This document shows, piece by piece, positions 1 through 59,699 of a stretch of 64,000 nucleotides of DNA. The stretch covers positions 166,158-230,157 of the forward strand of contig JAKMXF010000337.1 in the NCBI GenBank assembly GCA_024704765.1, written 5' to 3'. A model generated the notes under the pieces. It was not told where the DNA came from. It worked only from the letters and a program-made list of their open reading frames with translations, and did no database searches. Position numbers and translations under genes: made by a program. Each line of letters begins with the position of its first letter. The first letter of the stretch is position 1. The stretch comes from Oopsacas minuta (Eukaryota > Animalia > Porifera).

Positions 1-858
1 TCCGTCTGCTATCTGGAATTGTAGGGGATAATCTTGAGCTGGAGGTGGCGGTAGCGTGGACATAAGCCTGCAAAAAGTATGGCAGACGTGATGGGCATAT
101 GGCATATATACACCAAGTGGAGTTTCAGGATTGGGGTACATCTGAATATCCGACCGTAAAATTATACTGTTTCTTTCTTCTACTACCCTATAGTATGCCG
201 GGAAACGAATATCGCTAGATAGCAAGTGATGTCGGAGTTGTGTGTATTTCCTCCTGCCAATTTCTAGGAGATCTACAAGGAACACTGTCTTGGTAACATC
301 GAGCTCTTTCTTCAACAATTTACCGAATTGACCCGAAAACTTGTCATAGACTACAGATTTTGAAACTTTAACTATTTCTCGCTGTTTTGTTTGGTCCGAT
401 AGTAGTTGCAAGGCAAGTGCAGCTATCTTGATTTCTGAAGTATTCTCAACGATTGAGAGTGCTTTGATAGATTCCAAGACATTTGAGAGTCGTAAGCGTT
501 GTTGTTGCATCGTGAGATTGTCAATACTCTTCCTATGGTTTGCAGAGAGTGTGGATATGACTTCTTCATCATCTGAAGACAGCTCAACGGTATCATAAAA
601 ACGGTTCCTCTTCAACTCTGGTTCCATGGATATACCACAATGCCACCAGTCTCCCTCTAAGCAATCTAGCGATTTCTTTGCCTTCCTGATCCTGCTTCTT
701 ACTCGGAGGAGCGTTGCTTCCAATTGTTTCCTTTCTTCGAAGTCCATTTGAAAGTTCTGCTCAAAGAAACTGAGTGTCGTCGAGATACAGTTGTTGTTGT
801 CTTTCAAAATCTTCGCAAATTCAAGATGAGAGTTAGGGAAAGTTGGTTCTTGAGTCAT
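1..858 (-). CDS. RAG1-like/Transib transposase, N-terminal 286 codons, open and running off the window (copy A)
   Basis: Manual translation from ATG at 858 to base 1 has no stop: MTQEPTFPNSHLEFAKILKDNNNC...HRKSIDNLTMQQQRLRLSNV...FLVDLLEIGRRKYTQLR...YPLQFQIADG. It is collinear with the ORF fragments at 33403-34322, which continue into IADGLDGSG (first catalytic Asp region). Absent from the ORF track because the stop lies outside the window. Confidence 0.85.
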   Translation of the reverse strand, partial: MTQEPTFPNSHLEFAKILKDNNNCISTTLSFFEQNFQMDFEERKQLEATLLRVRSRIRKAKKSLDCLEGDWWHCGISMEPELKRNRFYDTVELSSDDEEVISTLSANHRKSIDNLTMQQQRLRLSNVLESIKALSIVENTSEIKIAALALQLLSDQTKQREIVKVSKSVVYDKFSGQFGKLLKKELDVTKTVFLVDLLEIGRRKYTQLRHHLLSSDIRFPAYYRVVEERNSIILRSDIQMYPNPETPLGVYMPYAHHVCHTFCRLMSTLPPPPAQDYPLQFQIADG

Positions 859-1494
859 TGATAAAAGCGTAGAAAACGGTTGATTATCAGCAAATTCAAT
901 TTGTTAATGTCATATTAATCATGTATTTATATATTACATTTATTGGTAATTGGAATGCTGCAATCGAGTAGATAAATTTAGCATATAAATTGCATAGCAA
1001 CAAAAAGGTGACAATGGAATTCGCTGAAATTTTTCATGTTGTGCACTGTTTCGGGCGTATCATTTTAATATGTCTTTCTAGATATTATAATGCCATTTTG
1101 GAATTAATTTCTAAGTGGTGTTTTGTGGTGTTTTTTTTGCGGCCATTTGGAAGTTCTTTTTTTAATAATATTGTACCTCTAAAGTACCATTAATCAAATC
1201 AACTTTGAGTCCAAATGTAGTAAAGATACACTGACGAAAATGAGAAATCAGATTTAGCATAACTGAATTGTGTTGAGGAAATAAAATAAATTTGATTCGA
1301 AGAATTCTGCGACGCTCTCAAGTAAACTTAAATTGGTGCTAATATTAGCATCACTGAAACCGCAAATAGAACTATTTTTGATTGATTCTTTAAATTCATG
1401 TTGTGAGAGCTATATGTATTTGATCGAATTGAAATTTGAAATTAACATTATTCAAACAAACAAGAACGAGTTTAAACCATTAAAAATGAAATCT

Positions 1495-1529
1495 ATTTTT
1501 TGTCTATTCTTTGCATTCAAACCACTGTG
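1495..1529 (-). repeat. 5' terminal signal of RAG1-like copy A (heptamer, 14 nt, AATAG, ACAAAAAAT)
   Basis: Minus strand reads CACAGTG GTTTGAATGCAAAG AATAG ACAAAAAAT. Heptamer at 1523-1529, 671 bp upstream of the ATG. Confidence 0.75.
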
Positions 1530-9479: not shown

Positions 9480-12387
9480 TGACTTAGAGGAGGGTCATTG
9501 AGCATGGTTACTGTATATGTTATGACATTCATTTCAATTTCGAAAACATTTATGACAAACTTAGCGATTCAAAATTATGTACAATCCACTCCGCTTAATG
9601 AAGTATCTTATACACTATTAATAACTTGGTTGACAGTTTCCTTTGTTGTTTTGAAACGATTTTCTACCAGTATTGGGTCACTATTACACAATATCCGGAC
9701 TAATACAACACCTTAATTGTTATTAAAGGATGTCTTACGAGCTAAATTTTGACCAAAACGCCGTACATACTTGTTGCAGGCTTCTAGGCACTCGTTTGAA
9801 AGATTTTTCCGACCGTACCCTCCATTATGAAGATGGATAATTTGGAAAGAAATGGGAAAGTAATTTATGCAAGGAAGGTTTCTGGTTGCCCAAGGAAACT
9901 CTATTAGAATGAATTGATATGTTTCTTTGCATAGTTCCTCAAACTTATACAGTTCATCTGTCCACCACTGTTGACCAGTCTCAACATTACTGATAGATAG
10001 GTTTGAATTACTTCAAGTCCTGGTTTGTGAATGGGATTAATTGAAGATGTAGCCCATTTCAGGAAATCTCTCTTATCCATAAAACAGTCAGGCGCCACAT
10101 TTCCAGTTGTCGAAGTACCGTCATGGCTTGGAGGAATGTCCACACCAATACTACACTTGTCTTCAATGATGGATCTAATATGTTTCATCGACACTTACAC
10201 CTTGGTGTTACCTTGCGACCATCCTTTGTAACTTAAAGCTAAATGATAAATGAATTTCATGAACCACTTGAAGAGACAAACATATGCGTGTAGTGGAGAG
10301 GTGGCTATGATGTCAATATTGGAATTGGGTGGGTAAGTTATACCAACACATTGTTGAGAAAGAAATTTCAAAAACTCTTCTTCATTAACTTCCCTGAAAA
10401 TTGCATGTGCATCCTTGACAAATCTGTTAATAAGGAATCTAGATTCAACTCATTTCAAGCTTTTAATTTGGGAGTCTGTTGCCGTACAAGGTAATATGAA
10501 GTACCTCCAGCGCCATGTAGGAGACAAACCATCCTTGTATTACAAAGAGAAGGGAATATTTGACAATTCGCTTATCTGCAACCTAAAGTAATACCATTAT
10601 TCTGATGTTCTCAGTTTCTGGGTTAATGAAAGTATTCATAATGAGTTTTACATTACTATAATCTTCTTTAAGAGCTACTAAAATTTCTGGCCTGAAAGAG
10701 AAAGGCGAATTTGGAAGCTTGTTGAAGAATACTTCACTTGATCAACATCAGTAATTCTAAGAACCTTAAATCCAACAGGATGAAGCTTTTAGTAGATAGA
10801 TTCGGATTTAGATTAATTTGGTTGTAGATGCGATGAGTAACTGGCCCATCTGACCATTCTACATTGAGAGGATGTTGTGAATCGAAAATTGAATCTAAGC
10901 TATTCAGCATAAGTTGAATAGTGAGAGAAAGAATTGAATGATAAGATATTGATATTTCAACTGAGAAAATTCAAGATTATTTAATATTCCCATTTCGTTA
11001 GCTAATGATATTTCGTGCGAAATAGCGTATTAGTTTTGTAAGATTGTAATTTCACCTCTTTTTTCACCCTTCAAGACTCTTTTGAGCTCAGAATATCTTG
11101 TTGCTCCAATTTCTAAGATGTCTAACAAATACGTTGATTTCTGAATAGATATTTTAGTGACAGCTTTAGTAAATGAACTCGTTTCAATTATTTCTTTACA
11201 TACACTTGAAGTATTCATTTCATATATTTCATTGGAATCAATTCCAAAGCTAGAGCAATAATTCTTTTGGGTTTGACTTCCTCTCTCAAAGATTTCAAGT
11301 TAATATGTCCATGTAGTACCTTTTGTCTAGCTCTTGAAGTTTTTAAATTACAATTTAAATGTGTAACCTTAACTCCACAGTGGTATATTCGGAAAATACT
11401 TAACAAGAGAAATAGAAAATATAGAAAGGACCTCAGAACTAGAATAATCTGAAATACTTTTTTCGAAGATGCTTCTCCTTGAATGGAATAGGATGAAATA
11501 GAATTTTCCTAGGTATCTAGAACATTCCTTTTTCGGGAGGATTCCCTAGATTTTCGGAGTACATTGAATTTGTGACGAAGTATTTGGCTGTCCTGCTCCA
11601 AAAGAAAGTGATTTTCGAAGAGAAGACGGATAGATTTAGTGATATTTCTTTCGTTGGCCAAAGTATCATAGGCTCCCTTGTTTGTTATATATTCAATTTC
11701 ATTTGTGAAATTGTAGACTATATAATACAGATTCTAATCATTATTATGTAAGCAATATCAATACTCATTATTATCAACCAATATTCTTTCTAAAATGAAG
11801 GCAATTTGGCACAATAGCTTTGTTGTACAAAAGGGGCCAAAACATCTTTGTCGGATATCTTTGACTCCAATTATCATTTGCCATGGAAATATATTTGGGC
11901 GCTTTGGAGGGTCTAGAAATCATTGAAAAAGAATCTTATATTCATGAATGATACAAAGATCCAAAAAATCAAACTTGAAATTGTTTGCAATATAAGATCA
12001 GCGACTATAAACTTTGGTATTTTGGAGGAAATTATCTAAATGTAGGCCAACAAAGACATTCATAAAATAATATCTGGGTCGTGGTTAAAATTGTTCAAAT
12101 CAATTAAGAATTGTATGTCAAATAGATAACAGATTATAAAGTTCACATTAAAGTGGCATGTGTTCACATATAGCAATAACTTTGAACAAAAGGATATTTA
12201 CTGCTTCGAGGCATGGAAATTACTAAATAATGCATTTGTTTGAGGCTTTTCATGTCCTGTTATATTTCTATAAGGCGTCTAATAACATCATATTTCTTGG
12301 TTAGAAATAGTGTAGAATCGAATACAAGCATAAATTTGATAAATATCAATGTCATATATTCCTATCACCGCATGATTCCACACTGTG
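9480..12387 (-). mobile_element. Decayed RAG1-like/Transib transposon (copy C) with intact 5' end
   Basis: Fragments YLLDILEIGATRYSEL (11030-11218), GVDIPPSHDGTSTTGNVA (9904-10194) and LSNECLEACNKYVRRFGQNLARK (about 9735-9810). 5' terminus CACAGTG-14-GATAG with heptamer at 12381-12387. 3' end not found; left boundary approximate. Confidence 0.8.
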
Positions 12388-12979: not shown

Positions 12980-14720
12980 CACAGTGTGATAGAATGACAA
13001 TTCAGCCGTAATAGGTTTATATTTTAACAATAGCTTCATTAATCTAATATTCATACAGAGGAAATCTACTGTATAGATTCCAAATATCAGATCAGATTTA
13101 AGCCACAATTAAATACATATAACTATGGTGAAATACACCATCAAAAATGATATCCTGTACCTGTCGCTGGAAGTATGGATTAATTTTACCCTTCCTAAAC
13201 CTATAGCTAGCCAGTATTGGGTCATTACAACTTAATAAGCATGTTTTCATATCGCGAAGATTATCCGTGAATGAAAATTTTGAGTTAGGTTTTCCCGAAA
13301 GAGTCTCACATATTTGTTGCATGATTCTGAAAATTGCACAATAAATAACCATTGTTCTATTTCTTAAGAATTTGGTAAGAATCAGAGAGAAATTTATGCA
13401 GGGAAGGATTTATGTTAGCCCATGGGATCTCTCGTAGAATATATCCATATGTTTCCTTACATAATTCTTCTAACTTAAGCGTGTTGATAAACTCATTGGT
13501 ATTGACTAGCTAGAATATTACAAAAAGATTGCTTTGTATTACATCTCAACAAGCTCTATCATTTGGTCCTAATAATGAGGTTGTCTACTCGAGAAATTCT
13601 CTCTTAGTCCTTAGGAATCACAAGGCACATTTCCGGTTGAATAGGTACTGTCATGTGGAGAAGAATATCTACCCTGAAACCACACTGTTCATCAATTATT
13701 AATAGAACTTGTTTTCATTGACCTTTAAGCTTCAGGTTTGAGCGTGACCATGCCTTTGTCCAGCATCCAATTAGTATTATATCACCAGCTTAAACAACCT
13801 AAGGACACAGAGGTAGCATATAAAGGAGTAGGTTTCGAATGTAACTAAATATGTTTACTGTATAGTAAACAAGTTTATTATTGGGAACACATTTCCCAAA
13901 AATGGTATCCCGAAGGATCTTTGACTATAATGATTTCTTGCGCAAAGCAAATTCTCTTCTAAATGGGGAAACTAATTAATAGAATGTAGTTTTATTCATT
14001 CACTCTTTAGTATTACTTAAGCTCCAAATATTTCGTTGCTCTAATCTCATCGAGTAGATATGCAGATTTTACTATTGATAATTTGAGTAGTTCATATCTA
14101 TATGAGCATCTCAATGGTCTGTATTGCAAATGTTAGAAGATTCTCAATTATGCTTTTATTAGAACCAAGTTGTAAATATAGTGCAACGAGTTGTTTGACT
14201 GTTATATTCTCCCTCTGCTAGGAAATAAATGTGTCTAAGAATGACGCTAAGTCGGATCCATAAGTTTTAGATTAGTTACCAAAATATGTTCTTTAAATCT
14301 ATGATAATATCTTCAGAGAAATTTCTTTTTGCTGTAATAGCTAGCAAAGAATGAATCTCTGTCTCCGAATCAACAGAAATTCAATCCCTACCAGAACAAT
14401 TGTTTAGGGAAATTGAATAAAAGTAGGAATTTTCTCAAGTTTCTAGTTCATTCCGTTTCCTAAAACTTTCTCGTGCAGACATTAGAGATTTGTACCTATA
14501 ATGGAGTCCTGCAGTGTCTTCCTCTGGAAAGAGATTCTGGCCAATCAGCTTTTTTGAACAACATTACTAACCTTGCGGCTATATGACAGATATATTGAAT
14601 TTAGTCAATTATGGAAGGAATAATTTTAGACAGAGATATGATGTTTGTACATATATATTGGTTTGGTATGGTACTGGCAGGTCCAAGAAGTGGCATCTCA
14701 ATTGAATCTTAAAAACACCA
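12980..14720 (-). mobile_element. Decayed RAG1-like/Transib transposon (copy D) with intact 3' end
   Basis: CACAGTG (12980-12986), 23 nt, AATAG (13010-13014). C-terminal remnant KFSFTDNLRDMKTCLLSCNDPIL (13098-13352) and a D(G)TYSTGNV remnant near 13630-13660. Right boundary approximate. Confidence 0.7.
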
Positions 14721-20600: not shown

Positions 20601-20903
20601 CTAGTAGACGTTCTAAGCTCCAAGGGTTAATATTTACTAATTAGGAAGATTAAAATGCAGGTATTATTACTTGTATCACGTAATATAATTGTGGAATAAA
20701 CACAATTCCACGTAATCTTATGAACCTCCAATTCCAATATGTATATATATTCAATATGCAATGCCTATACTACTCAGTTCTGAGAAACGGAATTTTGTTT
20801 ACGTCAATAGATAGAATTTCAAAAATGATACTTCAAGCTTCGCAGACTATTAAATTACATTCTTTGAAATGGAATAATACAGATTGGTTCAGATTGCGAA
20901 TAA

Positions 20904-21079
20904 CTAACGAGACAAATAACTAACAGGGCATGTGACTAACAGGACATGCATCTAACGGGACACGTGACTAACAGGACATGCGACTAACAGGACATGCATC
21001 TAACGGGACATGTGACTAACAGGGCATGTATCTAACGAGACACGTGACTAACAGGACATGCAACTAACAAGACACATTT
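20904..21079. repeat. 16-bp tandem array, 11 units (consensus CTAAC(A/G)GGACATG(T/C)GA)
   Basis: Unit starts every 16 nt from 20904 to 21064. Single copies occur at 17752, 17916, 18104, 18128 and 21231, all in the same orientation. Confidence 0.9.
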
Positions 21080-21716
21080 ATTTTTTACCTGGCGAAAGAC
21101 ATAAAGTGGAAACAGAAAAAATGAAATAATGTAAGTCCTCCTGTCTAAGTCCTTTAAGAAAATATAACTTTTCAGATAGATTCAAGTCAATTCTCACTTC
21201 AAATCAAACTTCTGAGTGGTCTATCTGTAACTAACGGGACTTCATATATATAAAATTTAAATCACAAACTAAAATTGTAAAATGAAAAGATACAGTCAAC
21301 TTTATATAAGAATATAGTTCAGACTCGTTACCATTATATATAATTAAAATTTAACTAAGGTTATTGAATATTTACCTTTAGGATATTACATGTCGCCCAA
21401 CGTCTAAATGAAATTTCGAATCTTAAAGAATTCGCGTGTGGCAGAATACTTCCGGCGCAGCATCTTTTTGCAAGGATGGTTCACTATTCTGACCACCATT
21501 TTGACACTTTAAGGTATTTAAATACCGAAATATAATAAGAATTTAGCTCTAGATATGATTGGAAAATTTGCGTTATGTTGCGTTTAGGGTGGAATTGTTG
21601 TGTTGTGATTCGTGTTAAGCCTAAATCGAGGAACTTACGAATATTCTTATATACTTAAGTAGAATACGGAATTTTGTATAAATTGATGATCTCTAAGTCT
21701 TCTGAAATTTCGATAA

Positions 21717-27723: not shown

Positions 27724-28304
27724 CTATAAAGAAAATGACAAGATCAAAAGATAGAAAAAAATACAGGTTACGTAATACGAAGCATAAAATTATTGTCTAG
27801 CACCAACAATTACAGAGATGCCAACTTTACGTTCCAAATGCTGATCATTACTGAAATACAACTATGGTAGGATGATCACGTCATAATTGAAAAAAATCAC
27901 GATGTAAATATGCTAACAAAATTTTTGAAAAATGGCAATTGCAAATAGTGCATATTCTCAATATATAGGGTATTACTACTCATAGAATCCATACTCGTTC
28001 AGATCATCTGACATAAAACAATTACTCGGTTAAGTACCAGGGGTTGTAAGTTTCTGTATATTTTTCGAACATTTTCATTTCGAATAATCTACTCCTTTTA
28101 GATATCATAATTGTAACAAATATGTATAGAAACCATACCGAAATTGTGTAGGAATAGTGGAATTACTCAATAATATAGTTGGAATAATTCCCAAAAATGA
28201 TCAATTTGTGACCAATTATCCCATCGATCGTCTCGCGATCCAAAGACATTATTGAAAGAAATTTTCACAATAAAATTACAGGTATAAATATTTTACTCGA
28301 AATA

Positions 28305-29215
28305 CAGTCAAGGGACAAATGTATTCGAACACACAAATATATTGTCATAAATTGTATACTCTTTCCCGCTCCTATATATTGTGTAGTCGATATTCGTAGC
28401 TGCTATCTAGTAATTTGTATAGAATAACATGTTTTTCAAGAATTTCAAATAATATTTTCGATTTACACTTTTTGAAGGTGTTAATTATTAATAATTATTA
28501 GATTATTATTGATAATCAAATATGTGGTAATTCAAAACCTATTAAGAATCTATAATTTCTGACTTGATATTTGAATTCTACGTAGGCGAGTTACCCCAGA
28601 TTGAAATTTCCAATCGGATTGAACAATTTTTACCAGAGTTATAGATGAACTTCAATTTATGCCATTTGTACCACTTTTTGAAAAAAGTGGTACAGGTGGC
28701 AAGAAAAAGCGCCACTACAAGGAAATCAACTAGGGTTAGGAGGAATAAGTCGAAGTAATATTTTCGAATGATATGACTATGCTAACCCTTGAATTCCAAA
28801 ATAACCTCTTGGTAACGGCCACTTGTGCCACCTTGGACACAAGGTGGCACAAATGGCACAAATTGAAATTCATCTATAACTCTGGTAAAAATTGTTCAAT
28901 CCGATTGGAAATTTCAATCTGGGGTAACTCGCCTACGTGGAATTCAAATATCAAGTCAGAAATAATAGATTCTTAATTGGTTTTGAATTACCACATATTT
29001 GATTATCAATAATAATCTAATAATTATTAATAATTAACACCTTCAAACTGTGTAAACCGAAAATATTTTTTGAAATTCTTGAAAAACATATGTTATTCTA
29101 TACAAATTACTAGATAGCAGCTACGAATATCGACTACACAATATATAGGAGCGGAAAAGAGTATACAATTTATGACAATATATTTGTGTGTTCGAATGCT
29201 TTTGTCCCCTAACTG
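28305..29215. mobile_element. Pogo-like foldback MITE, 911 bp, about 370-bp inverted arms
   Basis: Arms about 28305-28674 and 28844-29215 are near-identical reverse complements. TA|CAGT(C/T)A.GGGACAAA termini with TA on both sides. Confidence 0.85.
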
Positions 29216-29219
29216 TATA

Positions 29220-31688: not shown

Positions 31689-34600
31689 CACAGTGGGTTA
31701 ATAGGGCAGTTAGTAAAGAATAGCTATTTTGGTGTGAGATAGCCATATGAAATGTATTATTTACATATAGATTATAATATATAAGGAACCAATACATCTT
31801 GTCACAACAAGTATATGGCCTAAATATTCCAAGTTATGCCGTCATTGATATACATAAAAATTTTAATTTTCATCAATAAATACATTTTACTCGACTTTAT
31901 CGCCATGAAATCTATTAATTACATATTGGTTGTCCGTATTTGGCAAGACCTTGAACTTAAAATTTTGTTATAGGGCTTGTATTTATAGAGTTATGACGTC
32001 TTCAGAATTATGACGTCACACTTATGATGTAATTTATCTTATTGATTTACAAAATATACATCATACTCATACTTAAGTTCATGATAGGCAATCAGTATTG
32101 GAGGTTAAAGTCGTGAATAAAGTCTGTATACAAGTTTTCTGATTGTTCATAGCATTGCAGCATTTAGATCTCGTTGTGTGTCCAGATTGACCATATCGTT
32201 CACAAGTCAAAATTCTTCGATAGTTTACTAAGGTTGGATCACTTCGAGAGGTTAATCTGACGAAGATATCCATAATATTGGTCTCAAAACTAACTTTACG
32301 AGCTAAATTCTCACGATATTTTCCAACTAATTTGTTGCATGATTCTGTGCCTTCTTCTAAAATGCCTTTAAGCCATAGCCAGAATTCGACTCACGTATTA
32401 ACTCCTCGGAAAGGGCCAAGTGCTTGTTGCAGGGTTGGAGTCATGCTAAGCCAGGGGAAAGAATCTAAGATGACAAGGTAGGTATCCCTCCACAATTTCC
32501 CCAATTCCAAAGTGTTAACCTTGTGACTTGAATTGAAAACTCGAAGAATGGCTGAAAGCTGAGTATGTATCTTTGATAAGACTGGGCGATATTGTATTGT
32601 TACAGTTGATAGAATGCATCCAAGGTATTCAGTTTCATCAGAAAAGGCTCTTCTAGCAACATTCCATGTTGAGGTGGTTCCACCGTTAGAATTAGACTGG
32701 TCAACCTTAACCCTCTCTTCTCCTGAATAATGTTTGAAGGAATTTCATTGACTCCTTGATAACTGGTGAAGTTGGGGACCAGGTAAACTTTTCGATGCGA
32801 AGATGATATACCAGCAAATTGAACCACCTAAAATTGGTTTAATTATGTGAAGATAAATTCTGAATGATTAATGGAGTACTAGATTACTTACCTAAATACG
32901 CCTGTGTATGAATGGAGTGGAGATGCTGGATATATGTTAATCTCTGAAATTGGTGCATGAGTTAAATTGAAGCGTTCATTAGTCGAAAGAGCAAGAACGA
33001 CTCAATGTCATCAATGTGCGAAATATCTCGATTGCATCTGTGATATTTTTGTTGATGGGAACCCTCAAGAACTAAATTCCGATCCTTCAAACCTTTGTGT
33101 GGCAGTGCACATCTGACAACTGGCTCCTCCAGCTCCAGAGAAAATGGCTGCCATCTTCCCATCAACATTGAGTGGATAATATCGACATTGACAACACCAT
33201 TTTCTAAAGGAATCTCATTTCACAACATCACTGTATCGGGATAAATCATAGTTTCCATGAAGGAACGAATATTTTGCATTCTGTCGCAGCGCAGGGAAAA
33301 ATATGTCTTTGAGAGAAGGGTGAATTAGGGGATTTACTCTGCCAAACAATCCTGTTTGTTACAGTGTGGATGGAGATGGGCTTGAAACAAAATAGAATGA
33401 AGTTATTTGGTGAAAGTATTAGTTGCCTGCTGGTTGTAGATAGCGTGACAACCAGAACCATCTAAGCCATCTGCGATGTTAAATGTGAGTGGGAATTCTT
33501 CACCTGTGGGGTGATCTACCATTGACAATATTCTTTCCAGGGTTTTCTGAACTTGAAGACAATATGGTGCGTGTATACCTACTGGTTTAGCTGGATTAGG
33601 ATACAAAGTTATACTGGATCGCGAAATCATGACATCTCTCAGGTTACTAGCTTGCTGTAAGATGGGAAATGTATATTGTCTGGTAGAAGTGTTTGACGTA
33701 GTTGAGTGTATCTTCGTCTGCCCACTTCAAGTAAGTCTAGCAGGAATAAGGCTTTATCAACTGGAACATGCTTGTTACTGAGGTTACAGAATCTTCCACT
33801 AACAATAATCTCTTTGGCTACCGTAGCAACCTGACGATTATTCTCCTCATTTGCCAATAGTTGTTATGAGAGTGCTGCAACGCTTATTTCTGTAGTATTC
33901 TCAATAACTGGGAGTGACTTAATAAATTCTAGCAGACTTGACAATAGAGTACGCTGTTGCTGCAGAGAGATATCATCAAGATGCTTCCTATGTCTCACTG
34001 AATGAGTGGGAACTTCACCATCATCAGAAGACGAATCTAGTAAATCAGAACTACGATTTTTCTTTAACTCCCGTTTCATGGAAATGTTAGAATGCTAACA
34101 TTCTCCTTCTAAACAATCTAAAGATTTCTTCGTCTTCTTGAATCTGTTCTGAATTCTTAACAGCAACGTTTCCAAGAGTTTCTTATTATCAGAGTCTATT
34201 TCAAAGTGTTCTTTGAAATATTTTGTCGTTTTCAAGACACAATTATTATTGTCTTTCAGGATTCTCGCCAATTCGAGGCGGGACTTTGGGAAAGTTAACT
34301 CTTCTGTCATTGTTTTCAGCAAATTCCGAAAAATATGTATTATTCAGTAGATTATATATATCAGTCGCTATAATGAATTTCAAGAACGAAATTCAATACT
34401 ATTTCATTCAATTGTTGCAGTATGCTACAATGGGAATTTCCTAGCAACGAAAAGTTGTAATAGAATGTCATTGAAAATTATAGGTTGCACACTGTTTCGG
34501 GTTTTGTGGTTTTAGATTACGTTTTAGGAATCGTAATGCGTGTATCCGATTCATTTTGCGCTGTTGTTTTGTGTTGTTATTTTTCGCGACACTTTAAGTA

Positions 34601-51972: not shown

Positions 51973-52307
51973 GTTTCGCAGACTGTGTAAATTATAGTAA
52001 GTCATTTAGCTATTTTTATTCAAGTAAGCATTCCAGTCAATTTTTTATCCTATCACATATGGAGTATAATTACGAAAATTTAAGATGACTACATAAGCCG
52101 TATAAGTGCAACTCCGATAGGAAGGTTCCTTATTCTTTAACAAAATGGACTATGAGACGTCCGTCCAAACGAAATCTACCAATACGATTTACATAAAAAT
52201 TGGTATACATGTAAATTTAGGGGGGTAGTAAGCACACGCCAGGAGTTTTCTAAAGCGAAATTTCCAAATCTTTAGGTGAGGAATGATATTTTAAACCATT
52301 CCATGCG

Positions 52308-53239
52308 GAGGCGATTCCAGGGGGGTTACAGGGGGTCCGGACCCCCCTTTCTGAAGGAATTAAACCAAACCTGGACAAAATATCGAATCACTGCCTTAAG
52401 GTATGATATTGAGGATGAGTACAACAGCTGGTATGAAGAAGTTATCCACTTTGCCTCGAAGGTTGGTGTTAATATCACATCTCCTAGAGGACCTGGACCT
52501 AGATCTTCTCTACAAATATACAGAGCCAATGCTCCAAGTACATGTCCAAAGGAGTATTACCTGCGAAATCTGGCAATGCCGTTTGCTGACTATTTATTAG
52601 CTGAATTTAACAGTCGATTCAATACTGAAGACAGGAAAGGCATAGAGATCCTTGCATTACTCCCCGGTGCCATCACATTAGGTGTTGTTGACTTAGAGTC
52701 AGTTTTAATTGGACTAATGTTTTGGGGACCAGACCTGCCGTTTAGTTCTTTACTTAGATCTGAAATGAAGGAATGGCAGCGCTACTGGAGTTCCAAGGAG
52801 CCCAATCAATTATCAGTAAACTTGTCCGAGTGTCTAAGTCATGCAGATGAAGATATTTTTCCCAACATTCTAACCCTACTAAAATTGGATGCACCCTTCT
52901 AATTGGAAGTTGTGAGTCAGAGCGCTCATTCTCATGTCTTCGCAGAGTAAAAAGCTACCTTCGTAGCACGATGGGACAAGAGCGACTCTCTGGGCTAGTG
53001 CTGATGATTATGCATCATAGTATGAATATAAACTTAGACCATATTTGCTTGAAATTCATAGAAAAAACAAAGGAAAAAGTTTCCGGTTATGTGTTATTTG
53101 ACTAGATACGATTAAAAACTCACATTTATAATATGCAAGTATATTCATAGCAAATATTATAAATCTTTTATCCTCAGAAATTGCGTCTGGAACTTTGTAA
53201 AATAGACCCCCCCTTTTTTTCAAATCCTGGGACCGCCTA
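52308..53239 (+). mobile_element. Internally deleted hAT element (P58IPK/ZMYM1-like C-terminal half)
   Basis: ORF 52276-52902 (EYYLRNLAMPFADYLLAEFNSRF, DIFPNI) then SERSFSCLRRVKSYLRSTMGQERLSGL. Inverted ends AGGCGATTCCAGG / CCTGGGACCGCCT. TSD not found. Confidence 0.7.
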
Positions 53240-53808
53240 TACCTTGTCAAACCCATAGCATGCTAGAGGCCAGTTTCAACATGTTATCAGGAATATTTGG
53301 GCGCGTAGAGTCCGATTTTGAGGATTCACCACCTGAAAATTTCACCGATTTATCATTGAGTTATTACATCAGATGAGTATGAGCAAATATCCCCAAAAGA
53401 TGCCAGCGATATCGTTTCAACTGTACTCGATGGATGTGAATTCCAATATTGAATTATTAAATATACTAGCGCGCTTCGCTTGCTAGGTCACGGCGCGACA
53501 TCTTGGACCTCGCGTTTAGCTTAAGTATACATTTGCAAAAGTCCCCAAGTGCTATTGATCGATTAGCAACCGAGAATACTAGACGTCTCAGGCCTAGAGT
53601 ACATAAATAGCGGAAATTTTAGATTTTATCTCGAAAATGACATTTAATGGCATTATGTGGGAAAGTGGAGCTCCTGCTGTATTGGTAATTGATATGGGGA
53701 CTGGTAAACCGGAGTGTAATATAATTTTAGAAATTTGGAGAAATTAATTATATATTGGTGGTATACTAATTCAATAAAATGTAATGCGGGAAGAAATCAT
53801 CACGTCAG

Positions 53809-56800
53809 CACAGTGGCTTCACTAGTGGAAATGGACAAAAATTCATTTTCTGGAATTCAATTCAAAGTTTTACCAACTCAACCAGCATAGTCAAAAACCT
53901 ATGAAATTACATCTCGAAGCTAAATTCCTTCTCAGGACTTTAGTTAAGGTACAAGGGTATAAAATAATTCTAGGAAATGTTTGTAGTTTCATAGAATGCA
54001 ATATACTTTTCAAAAGCCTAATTCTAACACTATTAGCGAAAGGAGAATTTCATGCTCTTTCAATAATCTTCCAAATTTTCATGTAAGAATATGGGGTTGA
54101 ACGTTTTGGGCCTTATAAAAAAGTTTCGAAATCTCTTAGTGTGCACTATGTTGACAAATGATTTGAAAATAGTTTACATTCCGCCATGGCCGGTCACATC
54201 CAATCTGAGGCCCCCGTTCCCTAAGATAAAAACATGAGATGTCAACAGTCATTTGATATAACAATAAAATCATGGTACTACTTATATTTCCTAGAAGAGG
54301 ACCTTCCTACATTTAGCTCTGGCAAACTCTTCAAATATGTGGGGAAAAGTTAAGTTCATTACAAAGCTCGTACTCTATCGAAACTTCTGCCAGTCCATTC
54401 AAGTGATCCTGGTACATTGTTGATGGCAGGAAGTTTTTAATCAATTTCAAACGAGAGAAGCTTCTCTCCCCTATCGCCACTGTGACTGGTACAGTTAGAA
54501 GTATCCTCAGAGCAATGCTGAGGCTAGGGAAGAGATCCACCAAATTTTCCGGTATATGTAATCCAGCATGTCTAAGAGCCAATTAGACATTTCAATTGAG
54601 AAGCTTGTTTTAGCTAAGCTGACCTATAGATACAGATCATCAGGATCGATGTCACCCATCTCCTGAGAAAACGGTAGACATATTTAGCGCAATGGACTGT
54701 TTTGAATGCTTACCTCATCTCTTTACTACTAAAAGAAAGTCAAACAAAATGTAAAAAGAAAACAGCTGTAAATTCTCCCTGTAAGAGTAGTTAGGGTTGC
54801 TTCAATTAGTGGGAGAAAGAACTCTCGTTTGAATGTCTCTTCAGGTGACAAAGTCGGGTTATCGTCTGGAATTTCATAGTCAAACATAACTTTTTCCTTT
54901 CTACGTCTCTGCACAGGGAATGTCAATTCAACCCCAACCTGTTGTAAGATTTCTCGTGCGGATATGCTAATGTTGAACTAAAAACAATAGCAACCTACAT
55001 CCTATAGCTATATGCTCATGAAGCTAGGAACCATGATCATGTAAATTCATGTAAGCAATAGATTGAAATGGGACATTCGGAATTATTGTTAGACTATTAC
55101 CATTGGACAAGTCAATATTTTTGCTAGATTTCTTGCAAGTCGGGAAAGCCAAAGTAGACTAAAATGTAAGGGGCTATGTAAGTCAGAAAACATTATCTTC
55201 CATCTCTACGATAAAATCTCTGAATATCGTGAAAGTAATATACTCCCGCTCTCATCAAATATTCCACGAAATTAAGTGATAGAAGAATTGGCATGGGAAT
55301 TTCCTATAGCGCCATCTTAACGCAGACAGTATTATAGTTGTTTGAAATTCTTCTTCAAAATTTGGTTCTCAATATCTATTGAGGTTGAAGATATCAGATG
55401 GTTTAGATGGCTCAGGATGTCATAAAATTTATAACAATTTGATCGCATACCAACTACAAGGCCAAAACTTTCTTTCTCTTTGGGTTAAAAGTTTGGCCCT
55501 CCTTCACTCATCTTCGACTACAATTTGGTCAAATGAGCTACAGAATTCACCTTTACGTGTACGGCCATTTGTATTAAAGGCTAAAAAAGAAAATCCAGAG
55601 AATGTGAAATTCCTAATAGAAAGCCTGATCATCTCTGAAGTGGATTCAATTGTACTGGAATTTATCATACTTCAAGGGGTTTATTAAAAGTGACATTTCT
55701 TCGTACCACGATAGATGGTAAGATGTCAGGTATATTAAGTGGAGCCGGTGGCGCCCATTGCCAACTTTGTACAGCTAACAAATGTGAATTGAAAGATTTA
55801 GCAATACTAAGATCCAGATTTTCCATTTAATAGGAGTATTTCTTGTGAGAAAGAAATCTTTTCCATAGTTGATGAAGAAGAATATCTTTCACTTCCTTCG
55901 GTACAATGTCATGGATTGACCCATCCACCACTGTCAAGTATTGATATTATTCCAGCATCTCCTCTACATACATATGCCTGTGTCTTCCATTGGTACATGC
56001 TATCAATATGCCATATTGGTTCAAGAACATATAAATGGATACCTAGTAATAAAGTAATAGTAGATTCAATGAAGTTTACTAAAGAATTATCAAATATGAA
56101 GACTGGCTTAAATATAGATCAGCCAAGCAGTGATGGAGGGACTTATTCAACTGGAAATGTAGCAAGATTGTGTTTTCTCAATAAGAAAACTTCATTTATA
56201 TGGTTAATACTATGATTTCGCAAGAATTAAGGGAATCAATACCTACGTTGCAAACCAGCCTCTCTGTACTAGTACGTGTATTCAAATCTGATCATGCAAT
56301 CGATACGGACAAATTAGACACACTTTGTAAAGAGACATATGAATAAATACTTATTGCTTTTCCATGGGCAAGTGCAACAACTTCTCTTCATAGGCTCATA
56401 GCTCATTCTTCTTAAATAATACGAGATTATAAGAACGGTTCCGATTAAAAGACTTTTCAGAGGAAGCAGTTGAAGCTTGCAATAAATTGATAAGGAAGCT
56501 TAGTGAGCATCTATCTAGAAAGTTTATTTGCACTTCAAACGCAAGAGATATATTTGTATGTTTTCTGAACCAAAGTGACCTTGTCCTACCAAATTACTGC
56601 AACTAAATGCACTACAAAATCTGTGGAGAATTTGGATATACTTGTCGCTGGAGAACTAGTCATCTGCAGCTTGTACCCCAAGAACAAGTTGCTATGTTCA
56701 ACTGATTAAATATTGATAATTGACTCTTCTAATATATATTTTCACTTAGTATGAGCAAAAATATGAAAGAAATAGTACATTGTCTACAGATCATGTGGAA

Positions 56801-57038
56801 AATATTATTAAACTTCGTGCGTCACTAAAAATAATATTATTGAACCACAATTTCAATCATTGTATCCAAATTTAAAATATTAAAATAGATTTAATCTAGC
56901 TAACTACTAATCTACTTCAATTTTAATAGTTGCATCCAACTCGTAACTACCGATTTGCTAGGCATCAATAATACATTCCATATAGCTAAGTAGTAAGTTA
57001 ATACCTATTAATTTTAACCCCTAATTAAAGTCACTGTG
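53809..57038 (+). mobile_element. RAG1-like/Transib transposon with both ends and 5-bp TSD (copy E)
   Basis: GTCAG|CACAGTG-14-AATGG-ACAAAAATT ... CTATT-22-CACTGTG|GTCAG. Interior about 54975-56700 encodes decayed LPLDKSIFLLDFLQVG, ISDGLDGSG, TTIDGKMSGILSGAGGAHCQLC, PASPLH, GGTYSTGNVAR, LHRLIAH, SEEAVEACNK. Confidence 0.92.
54185..54970 (-). pseudogene. hAT transposase 3' remnant nested in RAG1-like copy E
   Basis: ORFs 54729-54926 (RRRKEKVMFDYE...FKREFF) and 54331-54582 (LRILLTVPVTVAIGERSFSRLKLIKN). It occupies the position of the missing N-terminal codons of copy E. Confidence 0.75.
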
Positions 57039-59699
57039 GTCAGGATATTGGGCATATTGCCAGCGATAAAAAATTCAATCATCTAGCATATACATCAGCC
57101 GAGCCGTGGCAAATAATGTCATTTTTCGAAAACATAAAGGTGATAATTACGCCATAATTTCCTCATATGTGTGAGTTTTGTTCCAAGACTCGAAAATGTC
57201 CGAGCCATGGTAAAAATTAGCCCTGGGGTCATACAAACATATATATAATTATATATCTATATATACACAAATTAAGATAAATCGCGTGTAAATAGCATAG
57301 ATTTCAACATTTCTACAGGATTAATCACATGATCAAGTATTTTTCACACCCGTGCCAGATTAAAGTTGCGGGGAGCGGCGGGTCCCTTAACTCAACAAAA
57401 TGATATGTTATATGAACATTTCTTCAAGGCAAATTTACAAGTCCAAAAGAAGAAATTTTTCCATTTATCCCCCTAACCCTGGACACCATCTGGGCAGAAT
57501 CACTAATCACAATTATGCTACACCACTGTGTATTAATGGAACTTATTCCACCTAATTTCAAATACTTTTAAACAATTCCCGCACTCAAATCGAGATTTCA
57601 GCAACTTATGGACATTATTAAGTCACACACTTTCTCAGCCGTATTCGGTTAAGTATTTTCTCACTGGTAACCCTTCAGAAATAACCACAGTAATGCGGGT
57701 AATAGGAGGGATGGTTGCGCCCGACAGGCCCGCGTTGAACTATAGATACCTGGCTTATCTTCAGGGTTACCGTGGGAACAGAATTTAATTCCCATTGGTG
57801 TGAAGGAAGTGTAGAACAAGGAAATAAAAATCAGAAAGAGAGGGGGCCCACTCATACGTTTCTTTTCAGCCTTTTGCGATATGGTTTATCCGGCAATGTA
57901 ACACATTTGGGCAAATACAGGAGAGTGAGGCTAATAGCAATTCGCCTAGTAGATATCAATTTCGAAGTCCCAAGTGAGTGCATAGGCATTCACATACAGT
58001 TGGGTTGAAAACAAGTGTACTAGTAATTCGTTTAACGGCAATATAAGCCAAATAATAGGTATTTCTATTCCCAGTGATTTATTGTTCGACGATTAACAAG
58101 CAAATCTTGCAAATACTGGAAGAGAGGCTTGTAACTTGTGACTTGGAAGCTTAAACACGCTGTTCTCATATCTACCGTGTATTTTTCTCGCATCTCTGCA
58201 GAGTTTTGAAGTCTACTCTTTCTAGTTATAAACTATGTATCTGTTGACCATTTAATGCGAATAAAATGTAAAAATACTGACTTATGACTGCAAATAAGCT
58301 TGTCAGTAAAACATTTCTAAATCAAAACTCCTATATCTGAACTGTGGTAAATAATCTCAACGGTTCACAAAACTTCACACTATCTTGGTTCATTAACTCC
58401 TAACAAAGCTCAAGTGCAAGCTCAAATTTTCAAACTGTAAAGAACCCGAAAACAACCTTTTGACCATTAAATTAATACTACATACGTAGATTCCCTCATT
58501 AAAAGCGTAGGTACATAAGTTCAATGCAAATAGTACCGAACAAAAGCAAATTCGCAGCCAAAAATTCAATATATAATTAGAAAACACTTAAGCTCTAATG
58601 GCTATCTCATAGGTATATTATTATCAATCATTGCCACCTTATTCAACTTGTTTCCAGGGAATTGAATAAAGTGGTAAATAGTTACAGAATTACGATGATA
58701 AATTCAACCAATTTGATATATCAAATTGAGTTGTAAAATTCTTCGATAGGAAATTCAGATGTGTAGAATACGATTAAATATTAAAAAGGCAATATCTCAT
58801 AAATTGTGAATCAGTACAAGAGATAATTAGATATAGTATAATACGAATTTGAATGAGATTCTTTGGGTGTACGCTTACGCAGTGGAGGGAAGTGTACTTT
58901 CCAATTTTTATGATCATCGTGATACTATCATAATATAAGTAAGACCTAATATGGTGACCAATAGTAACTGCAGTAAAAAGATAAACCCATTAGGTAAAAT
59001 AGATTGTTGACATTCAAGGCCGTGCCAGTAATGCAATCTGACCAAGTCAAATCGGTGCAGAATTTTCCAGACCAGGTTTTGACCTGGTCGCAGCCTGGGC
59101 ACTGAAAGTAGCGGCTACATTTGGAATCTCGATAGTTAGTAACTATACCCACGGTATATATTTGCATGTAAATAAATCAATAAGAATATACTTAGATCCA
59201 TATTGTTTGGTTGTTCTATTAAATAACCATGTGGTTTTGAATTAATTATCAGATCATTTTTTAAAATTGCAGTCCATTAATAATGGAAAAATATTTACTC
59301 AGTGCGTATATCTTAATGGGTCAGAGAATAGTCACAACTAGATCAGGCAAGTGCCTGGCCACTTTTTGGATCGCCCTGTACATTTTACAGGACTGCTTTG
59401 AACAATTAGCACTTTTTGCCTGAACACAATATATTTGCTGCTACCGGGCCTGCAACTTTTTGGGAGCCCTGATGTTTACTCTAGGTTTGACCTGGTCAGG
59501 ATAATAGGACTCCCAAGGTCCTGGAATTAGGATAACACAAAGGAAAGTACGCATAACAGCAAAGTTATATTAGCAAGAAAAGTTGGGTAAAACCAGATGT
59601 ACTATAAGACCAATACCATTACATTCCAAAAATTTGCAAGAAATTTCGCGGCAACTATTAGTAGGTCAGGGGTATGCACAGTTTTTTTAGGTTTTCCAT

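Follow-up and report, generated by a model that had tools for sequence, protein, structure and literature searches.

A 3230-bp element of the glass sponge Oopsacas minuta is very probably a dead, internally rearranged Transib copy from a large sponge radiation

We analyzed a 64,000-nt stretch of DNA from Oopsacas minuta (contig JAKMXF010000337.1; hereafter the window, to which all unprefixed positions refer) and, within it, the 3230-bp interval 53809-57038, which an earlier note made from the sequence alone had read as a single-gene RAG1L-type element, possibly placed between Transib and the two-gene RAG transposons. Our analysis indicates, with high confidence, that the interval is one old, dead and internally rearranged autonomous-type copy from a large O. 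minuta Transib radiation. A single RAG1-related gene, heptamer ends of the recombination signal sequence (RSS) type, a 5-bp duplication and the absence of a RAG2-like gene, the combination on which the note had relied, is what already defines a Transib element (Kapitonov and Jurka, 2005; PMC1131882).

Direct reading places exact heptamers at both termini (CACAGTG, 53809-53815; CACTGTG, 57032-57038) between two copies of GTCAG (Table 1), as the note had reported. CACAGTG is found seven times in the window and CACTGTG six times, which gives ten CACAGTG...CACTGTG pairs at 0.3-12 kb; an exact 5-bp flank match is present in only one of the ten, the 53809/57038 pair, and no heptamer pair with an exact duplication arose in 300 shuffles of the window, so that a chance origin of the ends is excluded. 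The ends are also real, family-typical transposon ends, because an independent copy (L005:1092-5479) has both of them at another site with a different 5-bp duplication (TATTG/TATTG). The two copies share 72% DNA identity between 53809-54020 and L005 1092-1315, 73% between 54041-54180 and L005 1396-1535 and 79.8% over 2111 bp between 54969-57038 and L005 3382-5479, and L005 encodes the nearest relative of the element, P0281, with 60-64% amino acid identity to the window remnant.

Short-read contigs from four runs of one sample cover the locus. The 5' junction is bridged without difference by one contig (X1 record 1, 53600-54314), and the 3' junction is covered in depth by X3, for which no single bridging record is listed; an empty allele, joining the two flanks across the element, was not seen in the short reads of this sample. 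The idea that the heptamers or the GTCAG repeat result from coincidence or from faulty assembly, the latter named in the earlier note as a way in which its reading could fail, can draw on the seven occurrences of CACAGTG but has a negligible probability given the shuffles, the bridged 5' junction and the homology of both ends to those of L005 over tens to hundreds of bases, and it is already refuted by the L005 comparison. Contig depth is several-fold higher in 54264-54319 and 55747-55887, with loose ends on both sides and words common to other genomic copies, and the second of these spikes falls in the conserved CxxC region of the transposase.

The interior of the element holds the remains of a DDE transposase. 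All of the core motifs that the note had listed are present on the plus strand at 55379-56640 (LDGSG, IDGKM, CQLC, SPLH, TGNVAR, LHRLIAH and SEEAVEACNK), spread across three frames, and the active-site and zinc residues can still be read (D 55397-99, D 55714-16, CxxC 55759-70, the two histidines of HxxxxH at 56389-91 and 56404-06, and E 56472-74). The corresponding D, D, E, C, C, H and H do not vary among 21 full-length sponge relatives. The pseudogene has decayed through at least four frameshifts and about 12 in-frame stops, and the CCGHC-type tail is reduced in the window copy to C..C....Y at ~56616-56650. The last reading frame stops at 56703-56705, and the 326 bp from there to the 3' heptamer agree with the earlier estimate of about 330 bp. 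The 333 bp that remain downstream of the stop are too few to accommodate a RAG2-like gene.

Taken singly, the open reading frame pieces of the element gave no matches against Pfam and PDB. A profile of the 21 full-length sponge proteins (A3) matched, among PDB chains, HzTransib with 160 bits (E 6.9e-46), BbRAG1L with 72 bits (E 2.8e-19) and RAG1 with about 62 bits (E about 3e-16), and the sponge protein P0169 alone gave 101, 51 and 24 bits, respectively. The AlphaFold model of a second sponge protein, P0213 (pLDDT 79), had HzTransib as its best match (6pqx_A; E 1.5e-22, TM 0.82 by target, 21% identity), and RAG1 and BbRAG1L ranked next at 15-17% identity. Pfam searches of the 21 proteins found only the RAG1 core, in 18 of them, and no RING or zf-RAG1/RAG1 N-terminal domain in any. 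Kelch, RAG2 and PHD models likewise had no match among the 128 stop-to-stop frames of at least 70 amino acids in the window, whose Pfam matches were to other transposons (hAT, pogo, Tc1/mariner and an integrase) and to TRAPPC13. Neither a RAG2-like gene nor RAG1-type N-terminal zinc fingers turned up in the window or in four complete relatives, and the first of these results bears out the description of a single-gene element; full-length copies with RAG2L, which the note had said would overturn it, were not among these four.

The element and its relatives thus combine a 5-bp duplication, heptamer ends that start with CAC and carry a second block, and one RAG1-core-like DDE gene with ZnC2/ZnH2 ligands, with neither a RAG2-like gene nor an N-terminal zinc-finger region. 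Features of RAG-like (RAGL) transposons, namely a convergent RAG2L, N-terminal C1-C3 plus RING/ZDD and a closer similarity to RAG1L/RAG1 than to Transib, are lacking. Martin et al. (2020; PMC7204232) distinguish Transib by its low identity to RAG1/RAG1L and by the absence of the N-terminal non-core region, and because the sponge proteins fit this description we assign them to Transib and not to RAG1L.

Several points weigh against this assignment. A profile built from the window alone matches only HzTransib, and weakly (E 0.059), and the strong evidence comes through relatives that are 45-64% identical to the window copy. Matching duplications are missing in two of six complete relatives (L003 and L004), although their ends were found. 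The probable placement in Transib, moreover, is drawn from scores, architecture and end structure and not from a tree with named references.

Compared with HzTransib from Helicoverpa zea (PDB 6pqn, 6pqx), the sponge proteins have their best match in both sequence and fold and share the DDE and ZnC2/ZnH2 core, the single gene, the 5-bp duplication and the CAC-type ends. They differ in that identity is only ~21%, that they are ~200 amino acids longer at the N-terminus (a region resembling the nonamer-binding domain (NBD) of RAG1 plus ~90 residues), that they have ~35-49 extra residues after CxxC and that many carry a zinc-knuckle tail. RAGL/ProtoRAG elements (RAG1L plus RAG2L; PDB 6b40) resemble them in the catalytic core, the NBD-like region and the CCGHC tail of the protein, and in having heptamer-type ends and a 5-bp duplication. 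RAG2L and the N-terminal C1-C3/RING region are, however, missing from the sponge elements, and the score is 72 bits there against 160 for HzTransib.

Further copies with 5-bp duplications, for which the earlier note had suggested a search, were found in L005 (TATTG), L006 (TAAAG) and L007 (GTCAG), and in L006 and L007 518-530 bp separate the stop from the element end. The GTCAG duplication is common to the window element and L007:2399-5669, which belongs to a different subfamily and carries a 712-amino acid gene; the wider flanks are unrelated, and the shared duplication may be coincidence or target preference. An apparently intact 725-amino acid copy lies at L003:3288-6549 (P0213, from a cluster of 37 sequences), where the 3' heptamer reads CATAGTG and the flanks, TATCG and AACAA, are unmatched. 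At the P0169 locus (L001/L002) only the 3' end was recognizable and a duplication was not found.

Seven 5' and eight 3' ends from at least three subfamilies were aligned. The 5' ends consist of CACAGTG, 12 variable bases and a conserved (G/A)GAAT(A/G)G(A/G) block that often runs into an A-run, and the 3' ends of CACAGTG, 21-22 bases and then GAATAGGTA. The block is thus spaced asymmetrically, by 12 bp on the 5' side and by 21-22 bp on the 3' side, in five of the six complete elements; the best match of the 5' block within the 3' end lies at offset 29-30 in those five, with 7-8 of 9 identities in four of them. At the sequence level the arrangement resembles RSS12/RSS23, a likeness that has been reported for some insect Transibs (Kapitonov and Jurka, 2005; PMC1131882). 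Transib families of Drosophila and Anopheles likewise have a heptamer, a variable spacer and a second conserved block at ~12 bp (5') and ~23 bp (3') (PMC1131882), whereas the second block of the sponge ends is GAATAG(G)-like and not AAAAAAATC, and the sponge 3' spacer is 21-22 bp. We also considered an RSS nonamer behind a 19-bp spacer for the A-run at 53835-53841 and dropped this reading, the 12-bp register being the one common to all copies.

The sponge proteins do carry traits known from RAG1 and RAG1L. Their N-terminal region aligns to the RAG1 NBD (RKxLxxLTxKxxRxRL against GRPRQHLLSLTRRAQKHRL in profile A3). Between CxxC and SPLH, that is between ZnC2 and ZnH2, lie ~35-49 residues that are absent in HzTransib, align without gaps to BbRAG1L and are helical in the P0213 model (pLDDT 82-90); by position only, this segment may be equivalent to alpha11-alpha12 of RAG1. 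A CxxCGExGH...C tail is present in about half of the sponge proteins, with five to six residues before the last Cys where CTT1 (Cx2Cx3GHx4C) has four, and is absent in the rest; the exact Cx2Cx3GHx4C occurs in many outgroup relatives, including a ctenophore protein. In columns 725-740 of A3 the tail is missing in P0239, P0240, P0244, P0246, P0255, P0256, P0262 and P0267. That it is kept in one set of subfamilies and missing in another points to loss within the host lineage.

It is these traits (the NBD-like region, the CxxC-SPLH segment and the Cx2Cx3GH-type tail of some members), along with the asymmetric ends (12 vs 21-22 bp), that speak for a single-gene element of RAG1L type, either a member or a direct offshoot of RAGL from before the gain or after the loss of RAG2L and so standing between Transib and the two-gene RAG transposons. 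We consider this very unlikely, because the family is roughly two times as similar to HzTransib as to BbRAG1L or RAG1, the N-terminus has no C1-C3 or RING zinc fingers, RAG2L is found neither in the window nor in the four complete relatives, and all of the traits in question have already been reported in Transibs (PMC9435367; PMC10629977). Tao et al. (2022; PMC9435367) described Subgroup I Transibs with CTT1, the alpha11-alpha12 region and asymmetric ends and called them Transib-RAG1L intermediates, and Martin et al. (2023; PMC10629977) state that asymmetric ends, the CCGHC tail and a GRPR/K-type NBD are all known from Transibs. The RAG1L-like traits are therefore real in the sponge family but already described for Transib, and the intermediate position suggested in the earlier note is not upheld as a new stage, its features being those that define Transib, the scores being 160 vs 72 vs 62 bits and the N-terminal zinc-finger region being absent.

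Within Transib, the sponge elements are most readily compared with the Subgroup I members of, for example, ctenophores and Hydra (PMC9435367). Both have a single gene, 5-bp duplications, asymmetric CAC-heptamer ends, an NBD-like region and the ZnC2-ZnH2 region that HzTransib has lost, and some sponge members have a tail that resembles CTT1/CCGHC. The differences are that the host phylum here is Porifera and that the CCGHC tail has been lost in a portion of the sponge radiation, and the likeness lies in these features, not in a tree. Sponge proteins match the clade that holds a protein of the ctenophore Bolinopsis with ~205-220 bits, and a search from the most RAG1-like relative (P0125) returned only this ctenophore-type clade and no RAG1 or named Transib. 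It is possible, although we would stop short of calling it probable, that the glass-sponge radiation is a Subgroup-I-type, RAG1L-proximal lineage. Its single-protein transposons, of which seemingly intact copies encode ~720 amino acids, would then still unite heptamer-12/22-block ends with a protein that has an NBD-like domain, the part of the zinc-binding domain that contacts RAG2, and a CCGHC tail.

The window element has been rearranged in its 5' part. A 788-bp segment bearing hAT sequence has replaced approximately 850 bp of the original Transib, which comprised a portion of the 5' region and codons 1 to ~123 and thereby most of the NBD-like region; 54181-54968 stands where L005 has the remainder of its 5' region, a nested Tc1/mariner and the first 123 codons. 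Inside this segment the minus strand holds a C-terminal remnant of a hAT transposase (54334-54582 and 54732 to ~54960), the first part of which is the hAT dimerisation domain (Pfam Dimer_Tnp_hAT, PF05699; E 9e-10). Terminal repeats and an 8-bp duplication of a hAT were sought around 54100-55100 and not found, and the nested piece is a fragment, not a whole element. Upstream of it, a search for the lost N-terminal codons gave only chance-level matches. The feature list of the earlier note stands as regards the ends and the motifs, but had overlooked the second conserved block at each end, the hAT fragment (minus strand, ~54331-54960) and the fact that the first ~123 codons are gone. Some 700 bp upstream of the element (52276-53102) there is another hAT-like remnant that includes a dimerisation domain, on the plus strand and thus opposite to the nested one; the two are related at the protein level only (34% over 56 amino acids). 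The Tc1/mariner gene nested in L005 (1852-2841; HTH_Tnp_Tc3_2, DDE_3) occupies the same 5' region as the hAT piece in the window element.

Given that the rearrangement affects the interior but has spared the two ends and the duplication, the copy could instead be a non-autonomous chimera in which the hAT fragment and the deletion were present at the last transposition and which was mobilized in trans by the transposase of intact relatives. Many such relatives exist in the genome as a possible source of transposase, and L005 also has a foreign element nested in its 5' part. On the other side, no further copy was seen to share the hAT junction, read depth across the junction region is single-copy apart from the short spikes, and the hAT piece is missing from the nearest copy, L005; we regard the chimera as unlikely and prefer an autonomous-type copy that was rearranged and decayed. 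The window copy is dead, in that it cannot make transposase, and it is not likely to be still mobile.

Table 1. Coordinates of the element's features in the window, and complete relatives from other loci
Feature	Coordinates	Strand	Length	Details
Left 5-bp target site duplication, GTCAG	53804..53808	.		exact match to 57039-57043
5' terminal inverted repeat	53809..53843	+		CACAGTG 53809-15, 12-bp spacer 53816-27, second block GAAATGGAC 53828-36, running into A-run
5' subterminal non-coding Transib part	53809..54180	+		blastn against L005:1092-1535, 72-73% identity, two blocks
Foreign segment in place of codons 1 to ~123 and the remaining 5' region	54181..54968	-		without similarity to L005:1536-3381
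Transib transposase pseudogene, ~codon 124 to stop	54969..56705	+		tblastn with P0169 and P0232
3' non-coding part and 3' terminal inverted repeat	56706..57038	+	333 bp	
3' end, read inward				heptamer 57038-32, 22-bp spacer 57031-10, second block AATAGGTAT 57009-01
Right 5-bp target site duplication, GTCAG	57039..57043	.		direct reading
Complete relative L006			3418 bp	duplication TAAAG; transposase intact, 724 amino acids, one gene
Complete relative L007			3271 bp	duplication GTCAG; transposase intact, 712 amino acids, one gene
Complete relative L004			3025 bp	duplication no match; one gene
Complete relative L003			3262 bp	duplication no match; one gene

Searched against 1.84 billion representatives, a profile (A1) made from four pieces of copies in the window recovered 286 relatives, and a search with P0169 returned 120 clusters at 40-97% identity, every named one of which is from O. 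minuta. The relatives are single-gene elements of 3.0-3.4 kb with full-length transposases of ~700-725 amino acids, and have automatic names such as "Dna-mediated transposase", "hypothetical protein LOD99_..." and, in UniRef, "V(D)J recombination-activating protein 1". A maximum-likelihood tree with 50 rows unites all 29 from the sponge, among them six named O. minuta proteins and three copies from the window, in one clade (SH-aLRT 100), in which the element is sister to P0281 (support 99) and next to the O. minuta protein P0249. Each of the three window copies belongs to a different subfamily, and the window holds five Transib remnants in all, which are old and young layers of one radiation; the element, ~20% diverged from its nearest copy, is in an old layer.

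One of the other copies (1-1529, minus strand) runs off the start of the window and has its 5' end at 1529 (TATAG|CACAGTG, 12 bp, AGAATAGAC); its open N-terminal frame of 301 amino acids (1-903, minus strand) has only five Cys, in line with the missing N-terminal zinc-finger region, and no Pfam match. Three further decayed remnants, from other subfamilies, lie on the minus strand at 9656-11300, 13315-13750 and 31689-34343, the last of which keeps its 3' end (CACAGTG at 31689, 22 bp, GAATAGCTA) and a remnant of the CCGHC-type tail near 32157-32204. We found no description of Transib in sponges in the searchable literature, and neither the text nor the examined supplements of Tao et al. (2022; PMC9435367) mention Porifera or sponges.

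What we could show comprises the two ends with their duplication, the homology and decay of the coding region, and the lack of a RAG2-like gene; for the chemistry and the role of the second block we infer a course of events from the homology of the family to HzTransib and RAG1. A transposase of ~700-725 amino acids, with no RAG2-type partner protein encoded, would have bound both ends through CACAGTG and the GAATAG-type block at 12 bp (5') or 21-22 bp (3'). Excision would have proceeded by nick-and-hairpin cleavage with the DDE RNase-H-like site, and insertion at a 5-bp staggered cut, followed by repair, would have produced the GTCAG duplication. As to the probable order of later events, the 5' loss and the replacement by the hAT segment may have taken place after the last jump or just before it, and the frameshifts and stops would have accumulated after that replacement.

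Other repeats are also present in the window. An inverted repeat of 971 nt (5248-6218/7107-8077; 99% complementary, arms 888 nt apart) looks like a foldback or long terminal inverted repeat element. Nested inverted repeats occur at 28302-29218 (272-nt arms, 93% complementary; 135-nt arms, 95%), and a tandem array at 20887-21110 has ~14 units of 16 bp (ACTAACAGGACATGYR-like).

On its own the window copy is a fossil and changes nothing, but the family to which it belongs bears, to a moderate degree, on how V(D)J recombination arose. A sponge genome holds abundant and recently active Transibs in which NBD-like, CCGHC and 12/22-type features occur, and their transposase proteins are already in public databases under automatic names. 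If the tentative assignment to a Subgroup-I-type lineage is true, it would extend these elements to Porifera and would offer a tractable one-protein model for 12/23-type end pairing before RAG2 was acquired, for which the intact copies P0212, P0213 and P0228 are candidates in which single-protein, spacer-asymmetric cleavage may be found.

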